Shown here: positions 210-39,381 of the stretch, piece by piece | Layout: the number at the start of each line of letters is the position of its first letter | Position numbering within the stretch: position 1 is the first letter of the stretch | NCBI RefSeq assembly: GCF_964204865.1 | Contig: NC_135255.1 | Coordinates: forward strand, 1,550,001-1,614,000 | Length of the DNA: 64,000 nucleotides | Direction: 5' to 3' | Source: Styela clava | Taxonomy: Eukaryota | The notes under the pieces: generated by a model | Seen by the model: only the letters and a program-made list of their open reading frames with translations | What the model was told of the DNA's origin: nothing | The model's database searches: none | Made by a program: the position numbers and the translations under genes

Positions 210-3200
210 TTTGGTGGTAAAGAATACAACTTGAATTCGATAATTAATATTGGATGTGAGCATTCCTGTGCCTGCCGCAGGGACGGTAATATCAGATGTA
301 GATGTGAAGAAAAATCACAAAGGAGGTAACTTTTGTATTCTTCACTACCAGTGTACTGAAAGTTGTGTTAAATGATATGACATTTTTTGTTTGTCCAATC
401 TGGTATTTATTTATTTATCTTGTTAATCTTCAACTTGAAATTTAAGAATCTGTTCAATATAGTCTGATTTATCCAACTGTTATTTTGTTCCTCTAGAGAG
501 ATTCGCGAGTTGTCAACTGCAGAAAGAGAAACTTATCAAAATGCTATACGAACATTGAAGATGAAAGAAGTTGAGAATGACCAGACGGTCTGGGACTTGA
601 TGAGAGATGAATACATCAAAAAATTTCCAACTGCACAGGTATAAAAACAGTTGGTAGTTATAACAATTTAATTAATGCTATTGCTCATTCTGAACACTTT
701 TGTTTTCAGTCGCCAAGATACTTTTTGCTGTGGAACAGAGCGTTTTTGAGAAAAATGGAGTTGTTGCTTCAAAGTATTGACTGTGATATTGCAATACCAT
801 ATTATGATTTCACTCAAGATACAGGTATAAAATGTGGAAATTTAGGGGTACTTTTAAGGTATTTTATGAAGTTTTGAAACCTAAATTTCTCTTGGAAGTT
901 GACACAAAGCTATATACCATTCCTCAACTTATTCTTCTTTTTTATGTGTTATATCGTGTGGATGAAAAGTGATGTTTTCATTAATAAAAAAAAAAAAAAA
1001 AAAAAAAAAAACTTATTCTTCTTTGTTATAAATATTCTAGAACTTTTTTCAGGCCAATTTTCAAATTCTTCGATTGTTCCCAATAGAAATGCAGTGAATG
1101 GTAGGATTGTCTTTGTGAACCAAGAATATGATATGCAATATCCCATTATTGATTTTAATGTTTATATATTTCAAGGAAAATTGAACGATGCAATTATCTG
1201 GCAACCCAACTTTTTTGGTGGAGATGGAAATTGTGTTCCAGATCATCCTTTCAGAGTGTCTAAAAATGGAGAAGCAAGTATGTTATTTTATAAAACTTAT
1301 CCTGCTCGAGTATCCTAAATTATTTGAATTCTTAAAGCTTGTCAAACAATGGCCCTTGTCAGGAGAACACTCTTGTACCGTGCAGTAAAAGTCATCTCAC
1401 TGGTCTATTTACCTAATTTAAAGTTTTAATCAATAAAGCATTGCTTTTCTTCATCTATTAATAAAAATGTAAATAATAAATAATTTAAAAAAAGCATTGT
1501 ATTCGCCAAAACTGCTCTGTTAAATTCTCACTCATTTTTCTACTCTAATTACCTAGTTCAATGTTAAGTAGTTATGAATGTTTGAACCTACTTCGCCCAC
1601 CCAGCTTGCTGTGTCAATTATATTTATATAGGATCTACAATATCATCCATCTGCAATGGAATTGCATGAATATTTGTGTCGCTTTGCTAAAAAGAATAAA
1701 AAACTTAGAATTTTTTGTTTCAAATATTAAAATAGTTTCTGATCATCATCACGCGTATGGAACATACTAGATATGTTGGTGTTGAGATGCCCCATACACC
1801 TGACATATCGAAAAGTGACATTTTGTTTGATTTTGCAGGTGCTTGGGAGCCATGCTTGTCTCGAAACTTCTCTTCTTCGGTTAATATACCTTGTATGTTA
1901 GATGTCGCAACAGTTCTTAATTCAAAAACCTACGAACAATTAAGTGGGAAGCTAATGAATCTTGTATCTTACATCAACGCATTCATAGGTATTGTCAAAT
2001 TTTCTTCTGATTCTTCTTCGGGTAGTATTTAACACAATATTCAATCTGCAGTTATAATACAAATTTAGTTAAGGATAGATTTCTGGTATACTGGATTTAA
2101 ATCTACACTACAATGCAGAAATTATTGATAGGTTTATCTATAATAAGGATGGCTTTAATGATTCTAAGAAAATTATACCTCACTTTTATTCAAGGCTATT
2201 TGACTAATTTAACTTTTTTTTTCACAAAGGGGGTGACATGGCAACATCAATGAAAGCTTATGATCCACTTTTTTATACTGTTCATGCTTTTGTTGATTAT
2301 CTCTTTTTGACATGGCAAAAAATGCATCCGGGCAATGAAGAGCTTAAAGTATGTCAGAATATTTATATGTTGTGCTGCTTTTATTATGGATGGCCACTCA
2401 TATGTTTCCTATCAACGAAAAGTTATTTATTATACAAATAGAGCTGAGCTGTACTGGAACTGGATGAATTTTTCTATCGTATTTGATTGGCATTGTGTAT
2501 GATATCTATCTTGCAGTTAATGTTCAAGAACTGTTCTAGGAAATCCTGTTTTCTACACTGGCTGGACAATACGGCAAAAATAAAAACAAGCCTAGTTTTA
2601 TTCCTTAATTTGAATATTAATACCGTATTTATATTCTGTTATTTACAGCATATTCAAGATATACAAAATGTTCCCCTTGGCATGCACATAGATGATTTAT
2701 GGGATGGTGCTTGTGTTGAATATGGTGGTAAAAATCCAAATATTGCTTGCAATAGATCAGATGTATCAGAAGAGTCCTTTGGCTCTGATGGTTACAATTT
2801 ACAAGGATATAACAGACAAGGATTCAACAGGTTCAGTGTTACATTTGACACTTCCCCGTGTTATATTTCATAATTTTCAAATTCAGTAATGTATTAAATT
2901 TGACCTTCAGAAAATGCATTAATAAAAAATGTTTGGCTATCAATCCAATTTTCAAATATAGCAACTATTTTGATACATCGTTAGAATTAAAGATTTATTA
3001 TTTTATTTTAAAAGTTTTATGGCTACATAGCCAAACTAGCATTCATTGGTTAACTGTGATGCACTGATGTTTGGATTTCTGCCCATTAACAAATTACCCT
3101 TGCCTACTATGTTTCTATAACTAATATCCTAAACTCCCAAATTGATTAAATCCAGATATCATTAAGACACAGTGACCTGACAAACAATAAAAGATAACCA

Positions 3201-39200: not shown

Positions 39201-39381
39201 AAGGTGTATATACCCAGAGATGTGCCCAGCAGAATTATTATCTACAATAGAGGATCCTATGATCGCTGGTGTACAACATGCAAACAGACCGTTGCCTACA
39301 GTTTCTGCACGTGTCAACAGACATTCTGCACTAGTACGCCCACCTTTAGTTGCACCTCCACATATGGTTCCTAGAGGTTGA
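210..39381 (+). CDS. Giant multi-exon gene (5' incomplete), long isoform: 2x tyrosinase-like + G(Y/F)(D/N) repeats + EGF + Kunitz + ~31 VWC + VWD + C8 + TIL (kielin/chordin-like C-terminal half)
   Basis: Hand-spliced exons: 210-325, 497-638, 710-824, 1176-1277, 1839-1988, 2230-2348, 2649-2830, 3774-3964, 4250-4408, 4494-4603, 4934-5136, 5256-5449, 5690-5859, 6009-6110, 6384-6508, 7186-7296, 7527-7669, 7977-8116, 8398-8470, 9129-9257, 9596-9725, 10245-10353, 10768-10823, 10900-11028, 11988-12136, 12335-12544, 12934-13099, 13338-13535, 13914-14121, 14377-14542, 14812-14958, 15069-15239, 15465-15709, 15980-16150, 16289-16385, 19530-19612, 20279-20452, 20827-21003, 21770-21946, 22529-22702, 22929-23014, 23093-23183, 23549-23734, 24143-24236, 25089-25228, 25341-25454, 25568-25748, 26443-26624, 26883-26986, 27301-27467, 27563-27736, 28179-28327, 28685-28857, 29036-29162, 29421-29594, 29782-29955, 30257-30436, 31063-31164, 31586-31763, 32086-32189, 32926-33147, 33237-33467, 33958-34189, 34978-35105, 35198-35390, 36148-36295, 36515-36706, 37006-37220, 37348-37523, 37721-37858, 38200-38356, 39035-39381. 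The total is 11,172 nt (3,724 codons including the stop). Every junction is phase-compatible and GT-AG except one GC-AG. Confidence 0.85.
497..2348 (+). CDS. Tyrosinase-like (type-3 copper fold) domain 1, copper ligands mostly lost
   Basis: The spliced translation has the tyrosinase scaffold motifs [12 protein letters not shown]...[13 protein letters not shown]...IPYYDFT...[19 protein letters not shown]...PCLSRNF...[34 protein letters not shown] has become WNR, and only the last CuB His remains. Confidence 0.85.
1053..1100 (+). CDS. Possible 48-nt symmetric cassette exon ([16 protein letters not shown]) inside tyrosinase-like domain 1
   Basis: Acceptor tttttcag| and donor G|gtagga are both phase 1, in frame with the flanking exons, with no stop. 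It would leave a 75-nt intron, a typical size for this gene. Confidence 0.4.
2780..4560 (+). CDS. G(Y/F)(D/N)xx pentapeptide repeat region, module 1
   Basis: For example [29 protein letters not shown]...[16 protein letters not shown]...[26 protein letters not shown] across exons 2649-4603. Confidence 0.85.
5256..6420 (+). CDS. Small Cys module + EGF-like domain + Kunitz/BPTI domain
   Basis: Cys module [41 protein letters not shown]; [16 protein letters not shown]...[15 protein letters not shown]; Kunitz [51 protein letters not shown]. Confidence 0.9.
6685..6969. repeat. Dispersed ~285-bp intronic repeat, copy 1
   Basis: Near-identical to 8657-8941 (gagttagtaacaacaactatgag...gaggaagtccaaatttggt). 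It is bracketed by a ~49-bp direct repeat at 6643-6691 and 6972-7020. Confidence 0.85.
8657..8941. repeat. Dispersed ~285-bp intronic repeat, copy 2
   Basis: Near-identical to 6685-6969, same orientation. Confidence 0.85.
9129..12136 (+). CDS. Half-VWC + tyrosinase-like domain 2, copper ligands partly lost
   Basis: [16 protein letters not shown]...[30 protein letters not shown]...IPYFDWT...[11 protein letters not shown]...CVHHHPF...PCIKRQF...[42 protein letters not shown]. Confidence 0.88.
9976..10231 (+). mobile_element. tRNA-derived SINE
   Basis: GC-richer island with Pol III A-box-like TGGCTCATCGTG, B-box GGTTCGAATC and a CCTAT-repeat tail. A matching 3' fragment lies on the minus strand at ~40097-40180. 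Confidence 0.75.
11521..11757. mobile_element. Degenerate hAT-like MITE
   Basis: The left end CAGGGGTTCCCAAACTTTT is typical of hAT/Charlie termini. The right end (attcgggaa) matches only weakly. Confidence 0.35.
12495..13960 (+). CDS. G(Y/F)(D/N)xx pentapeptide repeat region, module 2
   Basis: [26 protein letters not shown]...[11 protein letters not shown]...[23 protein letters not shown]. Confidence 0.85.
15069..36580 (+). CDS. Array of about 31 VWC (chordin-type CR) repeats
   Basis: Repeated pattern CxYxG...CxxCxCxxGxVxC...C...C.HP....GxCCPxC across exons 15069-36580; 31 units by manual count. Confidence 0.9.
16754..17763 (+). CDS. Alternative terminal exon (short isoform): ~336-codon acidic, Tyr/Asp/Glu-rich low-complexity tail with a His/Lys-rich basic block
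   Basis: The acceptor cacacatag|GT at 16754 (ctaac branch-like motif just upstream) is phase 1 and matches the donor AAA G|gtgagt at 16385. The frame stays open for 1,010 nt to TAG at 17763 and contains the ORF-track 302-aa ORF. AATAAA occurs at ~18407 and ~18471. The short isoform totals 2,046 codons in the window. Confidence 0.75.
21120..21727. mobile_element. Tc1/mariner/pogo-type MITE, with a possible nested hAT-like fragment (~21371-21530)
   Basis: TA|CCGTATATGCTCGTTTT...AAAACGAGCAAATACGG|TA gives TIRs and a TA target duplication. GGGCCC sub-terminal repeats are present, and an internal CCGTGGTTCTCAAACT...TTGAGAAC resembles hAT ends. Confidence 0.8.
24520..25009. mobile_element. Tc1/mariner/pogo-type MITE inserted in a (TA)n tract
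   Basis: TA|CAGTGATACCTCAGTAGTCGAAC...GTTCGACTATCAAGGTATCACTG|TA. Confidence 0.85.
25839..26045. mobile_element. Palindromic MITE with GGTTAGGGTTAGG motif
   Basis: Long inverted arms tagtatgtgtaccaggttagggttaggccataatt (~25879-25912) and aattatggcctaaccctgacctggtacacatacta (~25992-26026), plus outer ctccc...gtgaac / gttcac...gggag arms. Confidence 0.75.
36580..39240 (+). CDS. VWD (GDPH) + C8 + TIL domains, kielin/KCP/BMPER-type C-terminus
   Basis: [27 protein letters not shown]...TCGLCGNFN...FGNDWK; C8 [18 protein letters not shown]...CVYDLCAC...[13 protein letters not shown]; [23 protein letters not shown]...[10 protein letters not shown]. Confidence 0.93.

Follow-up and report, generated by a model that had tools for sequence, protein, structure and literature searches.

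The long open frame that runs through positions 210 to 39381 of a stretch of Styela clava DNA, analysed here as a window of 64,000 nucleotides, raises the question of whether a new hybrid protein, two merged genes or a member of a known family is encoded. It is the 3' four-fifths of a single gene, LOC120330882, and this kielin/chordin-like matrix gene with tyrosinase-like domains is old, widespread and already annotated rather than a new hybrid. With high confidence we regard it as the ascidian orthologue of the ancestral long-form kielin/KCP (kielin/chordin-like protein), a probable role in modulating BMP signals forming part of this explanation.

The gene model was rebuilt by listing donor and acceptor pairs between 72 coding blocks and then joining the exons. 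This gave 72 phase-compatible exons with a total of 11,199 nt, or 3,732 codons plus the stop, which is the sole stop and terminal. A canonical phase-compatible pair is present at 70 of the 71 junctions, whereas junction 9257>9596 needs a GC donor (GC at 9258-9259) to restore a peptide conserved in homologues, leaving 70 GT-AG introns and one GC-AG intron. The RefSeq protein XP_039253790.2 (LOC120330882, 4,925 amino acids) is identical to the locus (100%) and threads as 93 coding exons which span about 58.5 kb. The last 72 of these, encoding residues 1203-4925, occupy 210-39381 on the forward strand, to which all features below belong, as an open frame with one terminal stop. Seventy of the 72 rebuilt exon translations are exact substrings of this protein; the RefSeq thread within the window comprises 3,723 rather than 3,732 codons because two boundaries differ (7296 in RefSeq and 7300 in the rebuilt model, 7527 and 7504, respectively). 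Both figures agree with the 72 exons and the uninterrupted frame of about 3,720 codons which had been proposed when only the DNA letters were considered (the sequence-only reading). The thread also passes through the two junctions singled out there for checking, 14958>15069 and 16385>19530. Position 210 is not the beginning of the frame, whose start is located 19.4 kb further upstream at G000:C6:1530849. Extension of the model in this direction, suggested as a way to find a signal peptide, yielded 21 further coding exons (G000:C6:1530849-1549009) encoding a putative signal peptide, a TSPN-like region, a coiled coil, one VWC, 18 EGF repeats and the first Kunitz domain, the N-terminus being hydrophobic and signal-like as judged by eye. 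The RefSeq record is called 'uncharacterized protein' and bears no functional name; isoforms X1-X3 of an earlier release have given way to a single model. The single-gene model is based on the RefSeq prediction, splice logic and cross-species collinearity taken together.

Pfam was run on single open-frame pieces of the window and on the whole of XP_039253790.2. The N-terminal fifth of the protein consists of the signal peptide, TSPN-like region, coiled coil, one VWC and 18 EGF repeats. Two copies of a super-module follow, each made up of a Kunitz domain, a small cysteine module, a tyrosinase-like domain, GYD repeats and a cysteine-rich module, with one EGF repeat between the two copies, and about 29 VWC domains followed by VWD(GDPH)-C8-TIL end the protein. 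The matches on the pieces (tyrosinase at 611-874 and 2208-2438, EGF at 5635-5907, Kunitz at 6009-6110, VWC at 15035-15265 and 15347-15730, VWD at 36447-36707 and 36977-37255, C8 at 38176-38367, TIL at 39007-39378) bear out the order tyrosinase-like, EGF, Kunitz, VWC, VWD(GDPH)-C8-TIL which had been read from the DNA. Upstream of the window, the TSPN-like region shows 23% identity to shark residues 85-223 (E 0.008 against a small database) and no Pfam match, and the exon with the coiled coil and VWC matches Lingula and Argonauta at about 5e-9.

Within the window the first super-module is entered at a cysteine-rich, half-VWC-like exon (210-325), 35% identical to its partner before module 2 (9129-9257), which itself has a weak match to a pacifastin/VWC-type Pfam entry. 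Tyrosinase-like module 1 (497-2830) was delimited by PF00264 on pieces, exon boundaries and ligand columns and comprises six exons (497-638, 710-824, 1176-1277, 1839-1988, 2230-2348 and 2649-2830). The first run of GYD repeats (motif G-[YF]-[DN]-x-x-G) covers 2760-4603, beginning at the end of exon 2649-2830 and continuing in 3774-3964, 4250-4408 and 4494-4603; it was recognised by similarity to the two other runs and by the motif positions in the RefSeq protein. The repeats gave no Pfam match in pieces 7477-7995 and 13294-13536 of runs 2 and 3. A linker and cysteine-rich module (4934-5449), the partner of 14377-14958 and collinear with Ptychodera and shark, closes the first copy. EGF repeat 19 and Kunitz domain 2 come next (5690-6508; exons 5690-5859, 6009-6110 and 6384-6508), with Pfam E values on pieces of 2.3e-8 for EGF and 3.4e-12 for Kunitz, and the cysteine spacing of the latter is exact only when 5859 is joined to 6009. 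GYD run 2 (6450-8116) occupies the end of 6384-6508 and exons 7186-7296, 7527-7669 and 7977-8116. Ahead of module 2 lie a small cysteine module and a half-VWC-like exon (8398-9257), taken from direct reading and RefSeq, the exon ending at the GC donor. When 9257 is joined to 9596, a junction which RefSeq uses as well, the conserved beginning of the tyrosinase-like domain is recovered. Module 2 (9596-12136; exons 9596-9725, 10245-10353, 10768-10823, 10900-11028 and 11988-12136) was assigned from a phmmer search with 11989-12135, alignment with hemocyanin and tyrosinase, ligand columns and a tree. A post-tyrosinase segment with GYD run 3 (12335-14121; exons 12335-12544, 12934-13099, 13338-13535 and 13914-14121) is collinear with shark residues 921-1160, and a further linker and cysteine-rich module (14377-14958) leads to the VWC array as supported by shark alignment, splice scores and the RefSeq thread. 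Shark residues 1172-1326 align over 14389-15235, spanning this link into the array, and the intron between them, 14959-15068, is only 110 nt long.

The array itself contains about 29 chordin-type VWC domains in 35 exons (15069-36295), identified by Pfam on pieces and on the whole protein, a typical exon carrying the second half of one domain and the first half of the next. Over the whole of XP_039253790.2 Pfam finds 30 VWC stretches, in agreement with the earlier count of about 31; exon-level matches reach 1e-13 and 6e-8, and 28 CCxxC motifs are present in the window model. The C-terminal part is formed by a VWD with GDPH at residue 4550 (36515-37523; exons 36515-36706, 37006-37220 and 37348-37523; Pfam 6.4e-11), a C8 domain (37721-38356; exons 37721-37858 and 38200-38356; 1.1e-17), and a TIL domain (5.4e-8) with C-terminal tail and stop codon (39035-39381, stop at 39379-39381).

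The continuity of the gene could also be questioned at the phase-1 intron of 3,144 nt between VWC 4 and VWC 5 (16386-19529), delimited by sequence, splice score and RefSeq. No other intron of the window is as long, and it contains a long open frame that has a stop of its own and poly(A) signals nearby. Two adjacent genes might therefore have been merged wrongly, a tyrosinase-like/EGF/Kunitz gene ending at 17763 and a kielin-like gene starting near 19530. Several findings make this very improbable. The 16385>19530 splice links VWC to VWC seamlessly in phase 1 with a score of 12.6, one of the best values obtained for the 71 junctions, and RefSeq joins residues 2911 and 2913 across it. Exon 19530-19612 begins in the middle of the array in phase 1 and contains no in-frame ATG. 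A separate signal-peptide exon between 17764 and 19529 had been named as a sign of two genes; in that interval no exon beginning with an ATG was found to combine a hydrophobic start with a usable phase-1 donor, the best candidate donor scoring -2.7 as compared with a model median of 3.0. Two genes would moreover strand the first four VWC domains of the array on the other gene, and more than 30 species have the same unbroken architecture.

An additional short isoform alongside the full-length product is a tentative possibility which we consider somewhat less probable than its absence. Here 16289-16385 would be spliced to 16754, making the acidic, tyrosine-rich and cysteine-free frame of 336 codons at 16754-17763 a candidate alternative last exon, and the predicted product of about 3,250 amino acids would have four array VWC domains, an acidic tail and no VWD. 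The chance of this sense-strand frame staying open is 2.4e-10. A TACTAAC motif is followed 10 nt later by a phase-compatible acceptor, the frame closes with a TAG at 17761, and an ATTAAA is present at 17860, 97 nt past the stop. It is single-copy, so not a repeat, and all its 22 tyrosines have an acidic neighbour. In its own frame the codon score far exceeds that in either alternative frame and is higher than that of intronic open frames by about 2 SD, but at 0.09 bits per codon it falls short of the real-exon mean (0.44) and overlaps with the upper values for intronic frames (maximum 0.17). Annotated forms from Phallusia and Clavelina also end within the VWC array before any VWD, but they stop elsewhere and have no acidic tail. 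Neither the three RefSeq isoforms nor the current single model includes the frame, no homologue was found in a search among proteins of 184-586 amino acids, and a cysteine-free acidic insert in the VWC array occurs in no family member.

Active tyrosinase domains making or cross-linking DOPA or phenols for tunic, adhesive or wound plug, joined in a lineage-specific hybrid to a BMP-binding or polymerising tail, were the suggestion of the sequence-only reading. The tyrosinase match is indeed significant (PF00264, 1.8e-34 in two stretches over the whole protein, 4e-6 and 1.3e-6 on exon pieces), tyrosine is abundant in both the GYD repeats and the acidic frame, and kielin-like VWC proteins appear in shell, egg-case and adhesive proteomes. 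Six copper ligands, three of CuA and three of CuB, were scored, with CuB positions cross-checked against hemocyanin alignments and the second histidine of the HH pair being what we take to be the ligand in its column. Only one of the six histidines is kept in module 1 and three in module 2, leaving both copper sites incomplete. None of 37 tyrosinase-like domains of the family keeps more than three, while 28 of 40 ordinary tyrosinase matches keep all six. The domains are therefore probably non-catalytic, and DOPA chemistry is unsupported. Since sharks and molluscs alike show these ligand losses as fixed, the domain must have persisted for a long time in the absence of a binuclear site. As the architecture is not lineage-specific either, we consider the DOPA hybrid highly unlikely. 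Homology to type-3 copper proteins (tyrosinases and molluscan hemocyanin units; PDB 3j32, 8trz, 1wx2, 3nm8) is clear in the CuB region, reaching 1.6e-22 with hemocyanin and 4e-9 with Streptomyces tyrosinase, but the ligands are mostly replaced and the domain is embedded in a giant matrix protein. In the tree all kielin-type domains form a clade of their own apart from ordinary tyrosinases (support 100/98). First modules form a clade (100/99), and Styela module 2 groups with other ascidians, sister to vertebrates at 94/94. Only a module-2-type domain is found in the vertebrate proteins examined. The two-module state is older than the protostome/deuterostome split.

The preferred reading, an orthologue of long-form kielin/KCP, is further supported by the taxonomic spread of the family. 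A phmmer search with one module 2 exon found long proteins with tyrosinase, VWC and VWD in Lingula, Argonauta, shark and Limulus. A search with the region gave 35 proteins, almost all of which share these domains, from vertebrates, amphioxus, crinoids, molluscs, arthropods and the ascidians Clavelina and Phallusia, the Styela protein standing among KCP-like ones at 2.4e-276. The same collinear architecture is present in proteins named kielin/chordin-like from sharks, rays, chimaera, coelacanth, sturgeon, salamander and teleosts, and also in amphioxus, crinoids, an acorn worm, Lingula, molluscs, chelicerates and two other ascidians. By tblastn, the shark and Ptychodera proteins align with the locus in collinear order from module 2 over the cysteine-rich link into the VWC array. 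PF00264 occurs together with VWC and VWD in kielin/chordin-like proteins of Hemiscyllium, Stegostoma, Heterodontus, Hemitrygon, Rhinoraja, Callorhinchus, Latimeria, Huso, Pleurodeles and teleosts; the statement that vertebrate members have no tyrosinase domain is therefore wrong. The placement of the locus with kielin/KCP was supported, with duplicated tyrosinase-like modules, EGF and Kunitz joined to the VWC array and VWD(GDPH)-C8-TIL in one gene. The claim of novelty did not, as the architecture already exists in dozens of species and in an exact RefSeq model, although the accompanying caveat about uncharacterised database entries proved apt. By names and architecture, the fish and shark kielin/chordin-like genes would be orthologues of mammalian KCP.

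The most likely role of the protein, as judged by homology, is that of a secreted BMP/TGF-beta modulator. Mouse KCP binds BMP/TGF-beta ligands and modulates their signalling (PMC6442991, summarising Lin et al. 2005 and 2006). The Styela protein would be secreted into the extracellular matrix, where its VWC array may bind ligands of the BMP/TGF-beta family and tune their access to receptors, as extrapolated from the distant homologues mouse KCP and Xenopus Kielin. The end with coiled coil and TSPN and the end with VWD-C8-TIL could serve in multimerisation or matrix anchorage, and the tyrosinase-fold, Kunitz and GYD modules might be non-catalytic binding or spacer modules.

Among known systems BMPER/crossveinless-2, a BMP modulator, likewise has VWC domains followed by VWD and TIL, but it has five VWC and is not known to have a TSPN, coiled coil, EGF array, Kunitz or tyrosinase-like domain (PMC2944808). 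Membership in this group was rejected, as the compact five VWC, VWD and TIL compare with 30 VWC plus EGF, Kunitz, tyrosinase-like and coiled-coil parts in Styela. NELL1 and NELL2 resemble the N-terminal fifth, with signal peptide, TSPN-like region, coiled coil, VWC and a run of EGF repeats in the same order. NELL proteins end after a few more VWC and have no Kunitz, tyrosinase-like or VWD-C8-TIL parts; the upstream exons of Styela are part of one RefSeq protein together with the remainder of the gene. Kielin of Xenopus and KCP of mouse and human share with Styela the coiled coil, VWC array and VWD-C8-TIL, and possibly the signal peptide and TSPN-like N-terminus. Xenopus Kielin, in the account of Matsui et al. 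2000, reportedly consists of TSPN, 27 repeats and VWD. Mouse KCP is described as having 18 cysteine-rich domains, and an N-terminal part with tyrosinase-like super-modules and extra EGF repeats is not among its features (PMC6442991). The long vertebrate kielin/chordin-like forms also have the Kunitz domain, the GYD repeats and a tyrosinase-like domain in the same order as Styela, but a single super-module of the module 2 type in place of two, and compared with them Styela has 18 extra EGF repeats which are common to other ascidians by their Pfam lists.

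The domain series which the sequence-only reading had named in this AT-rich window (about 32% GC), where short cysteine-rich open frames are plentiful on the plus strand, proved to be real. Pfam searches with single open-frame pieces yielded in this order, and always on the plus strand, Tyrosinase (611-874 and 2208-2438), EGF (5635-5907), Kunitz (6009-6110), VWC (15035-15265 and 15347-15730), VWD (36447-36707 and 36977-37255), C8 (38176-38367), and TIL (39007-39378). For the exon chain all frame-keeping donor and acceptor pairs were enumerated for each pair of adjacent coding blocks, and the RefSeq protein XP_039253790.2 was in addition threaded exactly onto the genome. 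A home-made splice-aware gene finder, which found the VWC exons but in the tyrosinase part skipped or over-extended exons and inserted small phase-neutral ones, was superseded. The chain of 72 exons is 11,199 nt long, its 3,732 codons are followed by a single stop at the end (39379-39381), and exon and codon numbers agree with those counted previously from the bare sequence (72 and about 3,720). A well scored canonical GT-AG pair is present at 70 of the 71 junctions. At the remaining one, 9257>9596, there is no GT donor and a GC donor at 9258 fits, so that the tyrosinase-like domain regains the conserved beginning present in shark and acorn-worm proteins. This GC-AG intron (9258-9595, plus strand), the sole one with a non-GT donor in 92 introns, is also used by RefSeq, and the frame at the start of the second tyrosinase-like domain (module 2) depends on it.

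The RefSeq protein of gene LOC120330882 threads onto the genome with 100% identity in 93 coding exons, 21 upstream of the window and 72 inside it. Seventy of the 72 rebuilt exons are identical to the annotated ones and the other two differ in their boundaries only (RefSeq 7296 versus rebuilt 7300, and 7527 versus 7504), both in the region of the GYD repeats, which are runs of a G-[YF]-[DN]-x-x-G motif. Single exons or database proteins were used as queries in the searches, while the joined model served for codon and stop counts and for a comparison of each exon with its RefSeq counterpart. With the full-length protein of 4,925 amino acids Pfam reported VWC, EGF, and Tyrosinase. VWD, C8, TIL, and Kunitz, which give clear matches on exon pieces, were missing from that listing, and this is attributed to filtering in so long and cysteine-rich a protein rather than to a true absence. 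In an earlier RefSeq release isoform X2 omits exon 27563-27736 (plus strand), corresponding to one VWC unit of 58 amino acids, and isoform X3 has a short alternative start instead of the first approximately 410 residues with TSPN, coiled coil, and VWC1.

The first 21 coding exons are located on the plus strand at contig positions 1530849-1549009, and the upstream extension which had been proposed for finding a signal peptide led to a plus-strand start resembling such a peptide within the 20 kb before the window. In this upstream sequence one region shows weak similarity to the shark TSPN domain, a coiled-coil and VWC exon matches proteins of Lingula and Argonauta (about 5e-9), and many EGF exons in a row and a Kunitz domain are also present. 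Compared with super-module 2, the upstream Kunitz domain and a small cysteine module supply the front part that super-module 1 lacks in the window. The whole protein begins with a putative signal peptide (residues 1-23), a TSPN-like region up to about residue 232, a coiled coil (about 288-335), a first VWC (about 340-386), and 18 EGF repeats (390-1077). Super-module 1 follows with Kunitz 1 (1084-1134), a cysteine module (1181-1240), tyrosinase-like domain 1 from residue 1241, a first run of GYD repeats (1498-1640; window 2760-4603, plus strand), and a cysteine-rich module (1732-1797). After EGF 19 (1799-1835) come Kunitz 2 (1843-1893), a second GYD run (1911-2024; window 6450-8116, plus strand), a further cysteine module (2061-2127), tyrosinase-like domain 2 (2128-2320), a third GYD run (2384-2505; window 12480-14000, plus strand), and a cysteine-rich module (2635-2684). 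The VWC array (2685-4518) leads to the VWD with its GDPH at residue 4550, and then to C8, TIL, and a short tail. The expansion to 18 tandem EGF repeats appears, judged by Pfam lists, to be common to other ascidian orthologues. The GYD runs flank the tyrosinase-like domains and are conserved from sharks to Lingula. They match no Pfam family, and a search of a GYD exon against a protein atlas gave just weak, unnamed bacterial and archaeal clusters. An AlphaFold2 model of a 549-residue family fragment (P0019), calculated from an eight-row alignment, had a mean pLDDT of 45.6, which is too low for interpretation and at most hints at short periodic strands in the repeats.

Two junctions had been considered doubtful, so that the tyrosinase part and the VWC array might have been two genes. 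Both held up. Junction 14958>15069 spans an intron of 110 nt, the cysteine-rich exon preceding it is part of the repeated super-module, and the alignment with the shark protein runs straight over it. At junction 16385>19530 one codon base comes from the upstream exon and two from the downstream exon. The splice lets one VWC pass into the next without a break, just as happens within other exons of the array, and with a splice score of 12.6 the junction ranks near the top of all 71. A separate signal-peptide start in 17764-19529, which would speak for a second gene, was looked for in the sequence and not found: exon 19530-19612 contains no in-frame ATG, 17764-19529 offers no exon that begins with ATG and has a usable phase-1 donor, and the sole hydrophobic ATG candidate there has a donor score of -2.7 versus a model median of 3.0. 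As RefSeq joins both sides of 16385>19530 and the uninterrupted architecture is common to more than 30 species, the two-gene reading was rejected, and both junctions are assigned to one predicted gene.

The 3.1-kb intron within the VWC array holds, on the sense (plus) strand at 16754-17763, a frame of 336 codons with an acidic, tyrosine-rich, and cysteine-free translation. That it is a real alternative last exon is a possibility we take seriously without favouring it. The chance of such a frame remaining open is 2.4e-10, it is present in a single copy, tyrosine adjoins aspartate or glutamate in 22 of 22 cases, a phase-compatible acceptor lies past a TACTAAC motif, and an ATTAAA is located 97 nt beyond the stop. 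On the other hand it is contained in no RefSeq isoform, has no homologue among proteins of 184-586 amino acids and no counterpart in any kielin family member compared, and its codon score is intermediate between those of introns and exons. Annotated kielin-like forms of Phallusia (P0173) and Clavelina (P0197) also terminate within the VWC array and have no VWD-C8-TIL end. The ascidian forms without VWD stop at positions other than that of the Styela frame, and truncation at the C-terminus may recur in this gene.

As to novelty, the gene model was already in RefSeq. When one exon of 49 residues (11989-12135) was compared by phmmer with 1.84 billion representatives, long proteins matching in two stretches were found. 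According to Pfam, Tyrosinase together with 20-30 VWC and VWD occurs in proteins of Lingula, Argonauta, shark, and Limulus, and a Ptychodera protein contains two Tyrosinase and two Kunitz domains, EGF, and VWC. With the shark protein as query, a region search gave 35 proteins, nearly all with PF00264 and VWC and most also with VWD, including the 'uncharacterized protein LOC120330882' of Styela clava with 4,925 amino acids, now XP_039253790.2. The fused kielin-type protein described in the sequence-only reading is thus genuine but not specific to a lineage, the same architecture being annotated in dozens of animals, and the statement that vertebrate members have no tyrosinase domain was mistaken, since vertebrate proteins of the family carry a tyrosinase-like domain. 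Some spiralian tyrosinase sequences of more than 3,000 amino acids have been noted in passing to bear 'kielin/chordin-like' domains (PMC11667028). As this remark is the sole relevant paper, the combination of tyrosinase and kielin is, within the searchable literature, annotated and noticed once but otherwise unstudied; nothing was found there on ascidian kielin. A claim of discovery therefore fails for this known gene and family, whose tyrosinase part is probably non-catalytic.

In its CuB exon, module 2 can be aligned with hemocyanin units of molluscs and with tyrosinases of bacteria, the first CuB histidine being replaced by serine and the third by tryptophan. Ligand columns were those with a conserved histidine in 40 ordinary tyrosinase hits aligned with the family domains. 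The CuA columns were also set from this alignment, the 42-residue CuA exon having no match in the PDB. Of the six copper-ligand histidines one is kept in Styela module 1 and three in module 2, and none of 37 family domains from 26 species keeps more than three, as compared to all six in 28 of the 40 ordinary hits. These incomplete ligand sets, in Styela and in the whole family sample, led to rejection of an active enzyme and argue against the phenol/DOPA chemistry envisaged before; the tyrosinase-like domains have probably lost their enzymatic function. Identical replacements are seen over the range from sharks to ascidians, which marks the loss as ancient and fixed.

For dating the duplication a maximum-likelihood tree was calculated from the 37 family rows; its outgroup was made up of ordinary hits 1 to 8, the other 32 of the 40 being left out. 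All kielin-type domains fall into one clade (support 100/98). Within it the first modules cluster (100/99), and this cluster also takes in the single domains from amphioxus and crinoids; module 1 of Styela sits on a long branch and its exact placement is unsure. Module 2 of Styela falls with the Clavelina and Phallusia domains, as the sister group of the vertebrate ones (94/94), and the vertebrate proteins examined have a domain of the module 2 type only. Judged from this domain tree, the two-module state predates the protostome-deuterostome split.

The window contains several further elements. An intronic short interspersed repeat of about 70 bases adjoining an A-run (941-1011) has many copies of 92-97% identity on other chromosomes, and a short element at 48-125 has dozens of genomic copies at about 80% identity. 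A 96-codon open frame in an intron of module 2 (9975-10262, plus strand), with an arginine-, glycine-, and proline-rich translation unlike the AT-rich surroundings, has no Pfam match and may be a repeat fragment. Downstream of the gene, two tandem copies of about 5 kb harbour arrays of a 95-base minisatellite (44418-46342 and 49623-51270, 20 and 17 copies, 88% matches), and the open frames created by them have no Pfam match. Exons at 57774-63389 (plus strand; Pfam Myosin_head, up to 3.8e-31) belong to a myosin heavy-chain gene that continues past the window end.

By homology, the Styela protein would be a secreted matrix protein with VWC repeats modulating BMP/TGF-beta signalling, and the dead tyrosinase fold, GYD repeats, and Kunitz domains are taken as binding or spacer modules. 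Tentatively, and as a whole rather improbably, the pseudo-enzyme of tyrosinase fold, together with the GYD repeats and Kunitz domain beside it, might be an ancient working part of kielin/KCP that has been retained since more than 500 million years ago, has disappeared in mammals, and docks the VWC array to matrix or to a phenolic or tyrosine-rich partner, Styela additionally switching onto an acidic, possibly sulfotyrosine-type tail via the candidate exon 16754-17763. Apart from the one passing remark (PMC11667028), the pseudo-enzyme part is undescribed for this family of BMP modulators within the searchable literature. The usual picture of kielin/KCP is corrected, the ancestral protein being far larger than the mouse and human form, and work on BMP modulation in fish, sharks, amphibians, and invertebrates would involve the long form. 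The ancestral protein bears one or two tyrosinase-fold domains with copper sites long lost, as well as unclassified GYD repeats and Kunitz domains.
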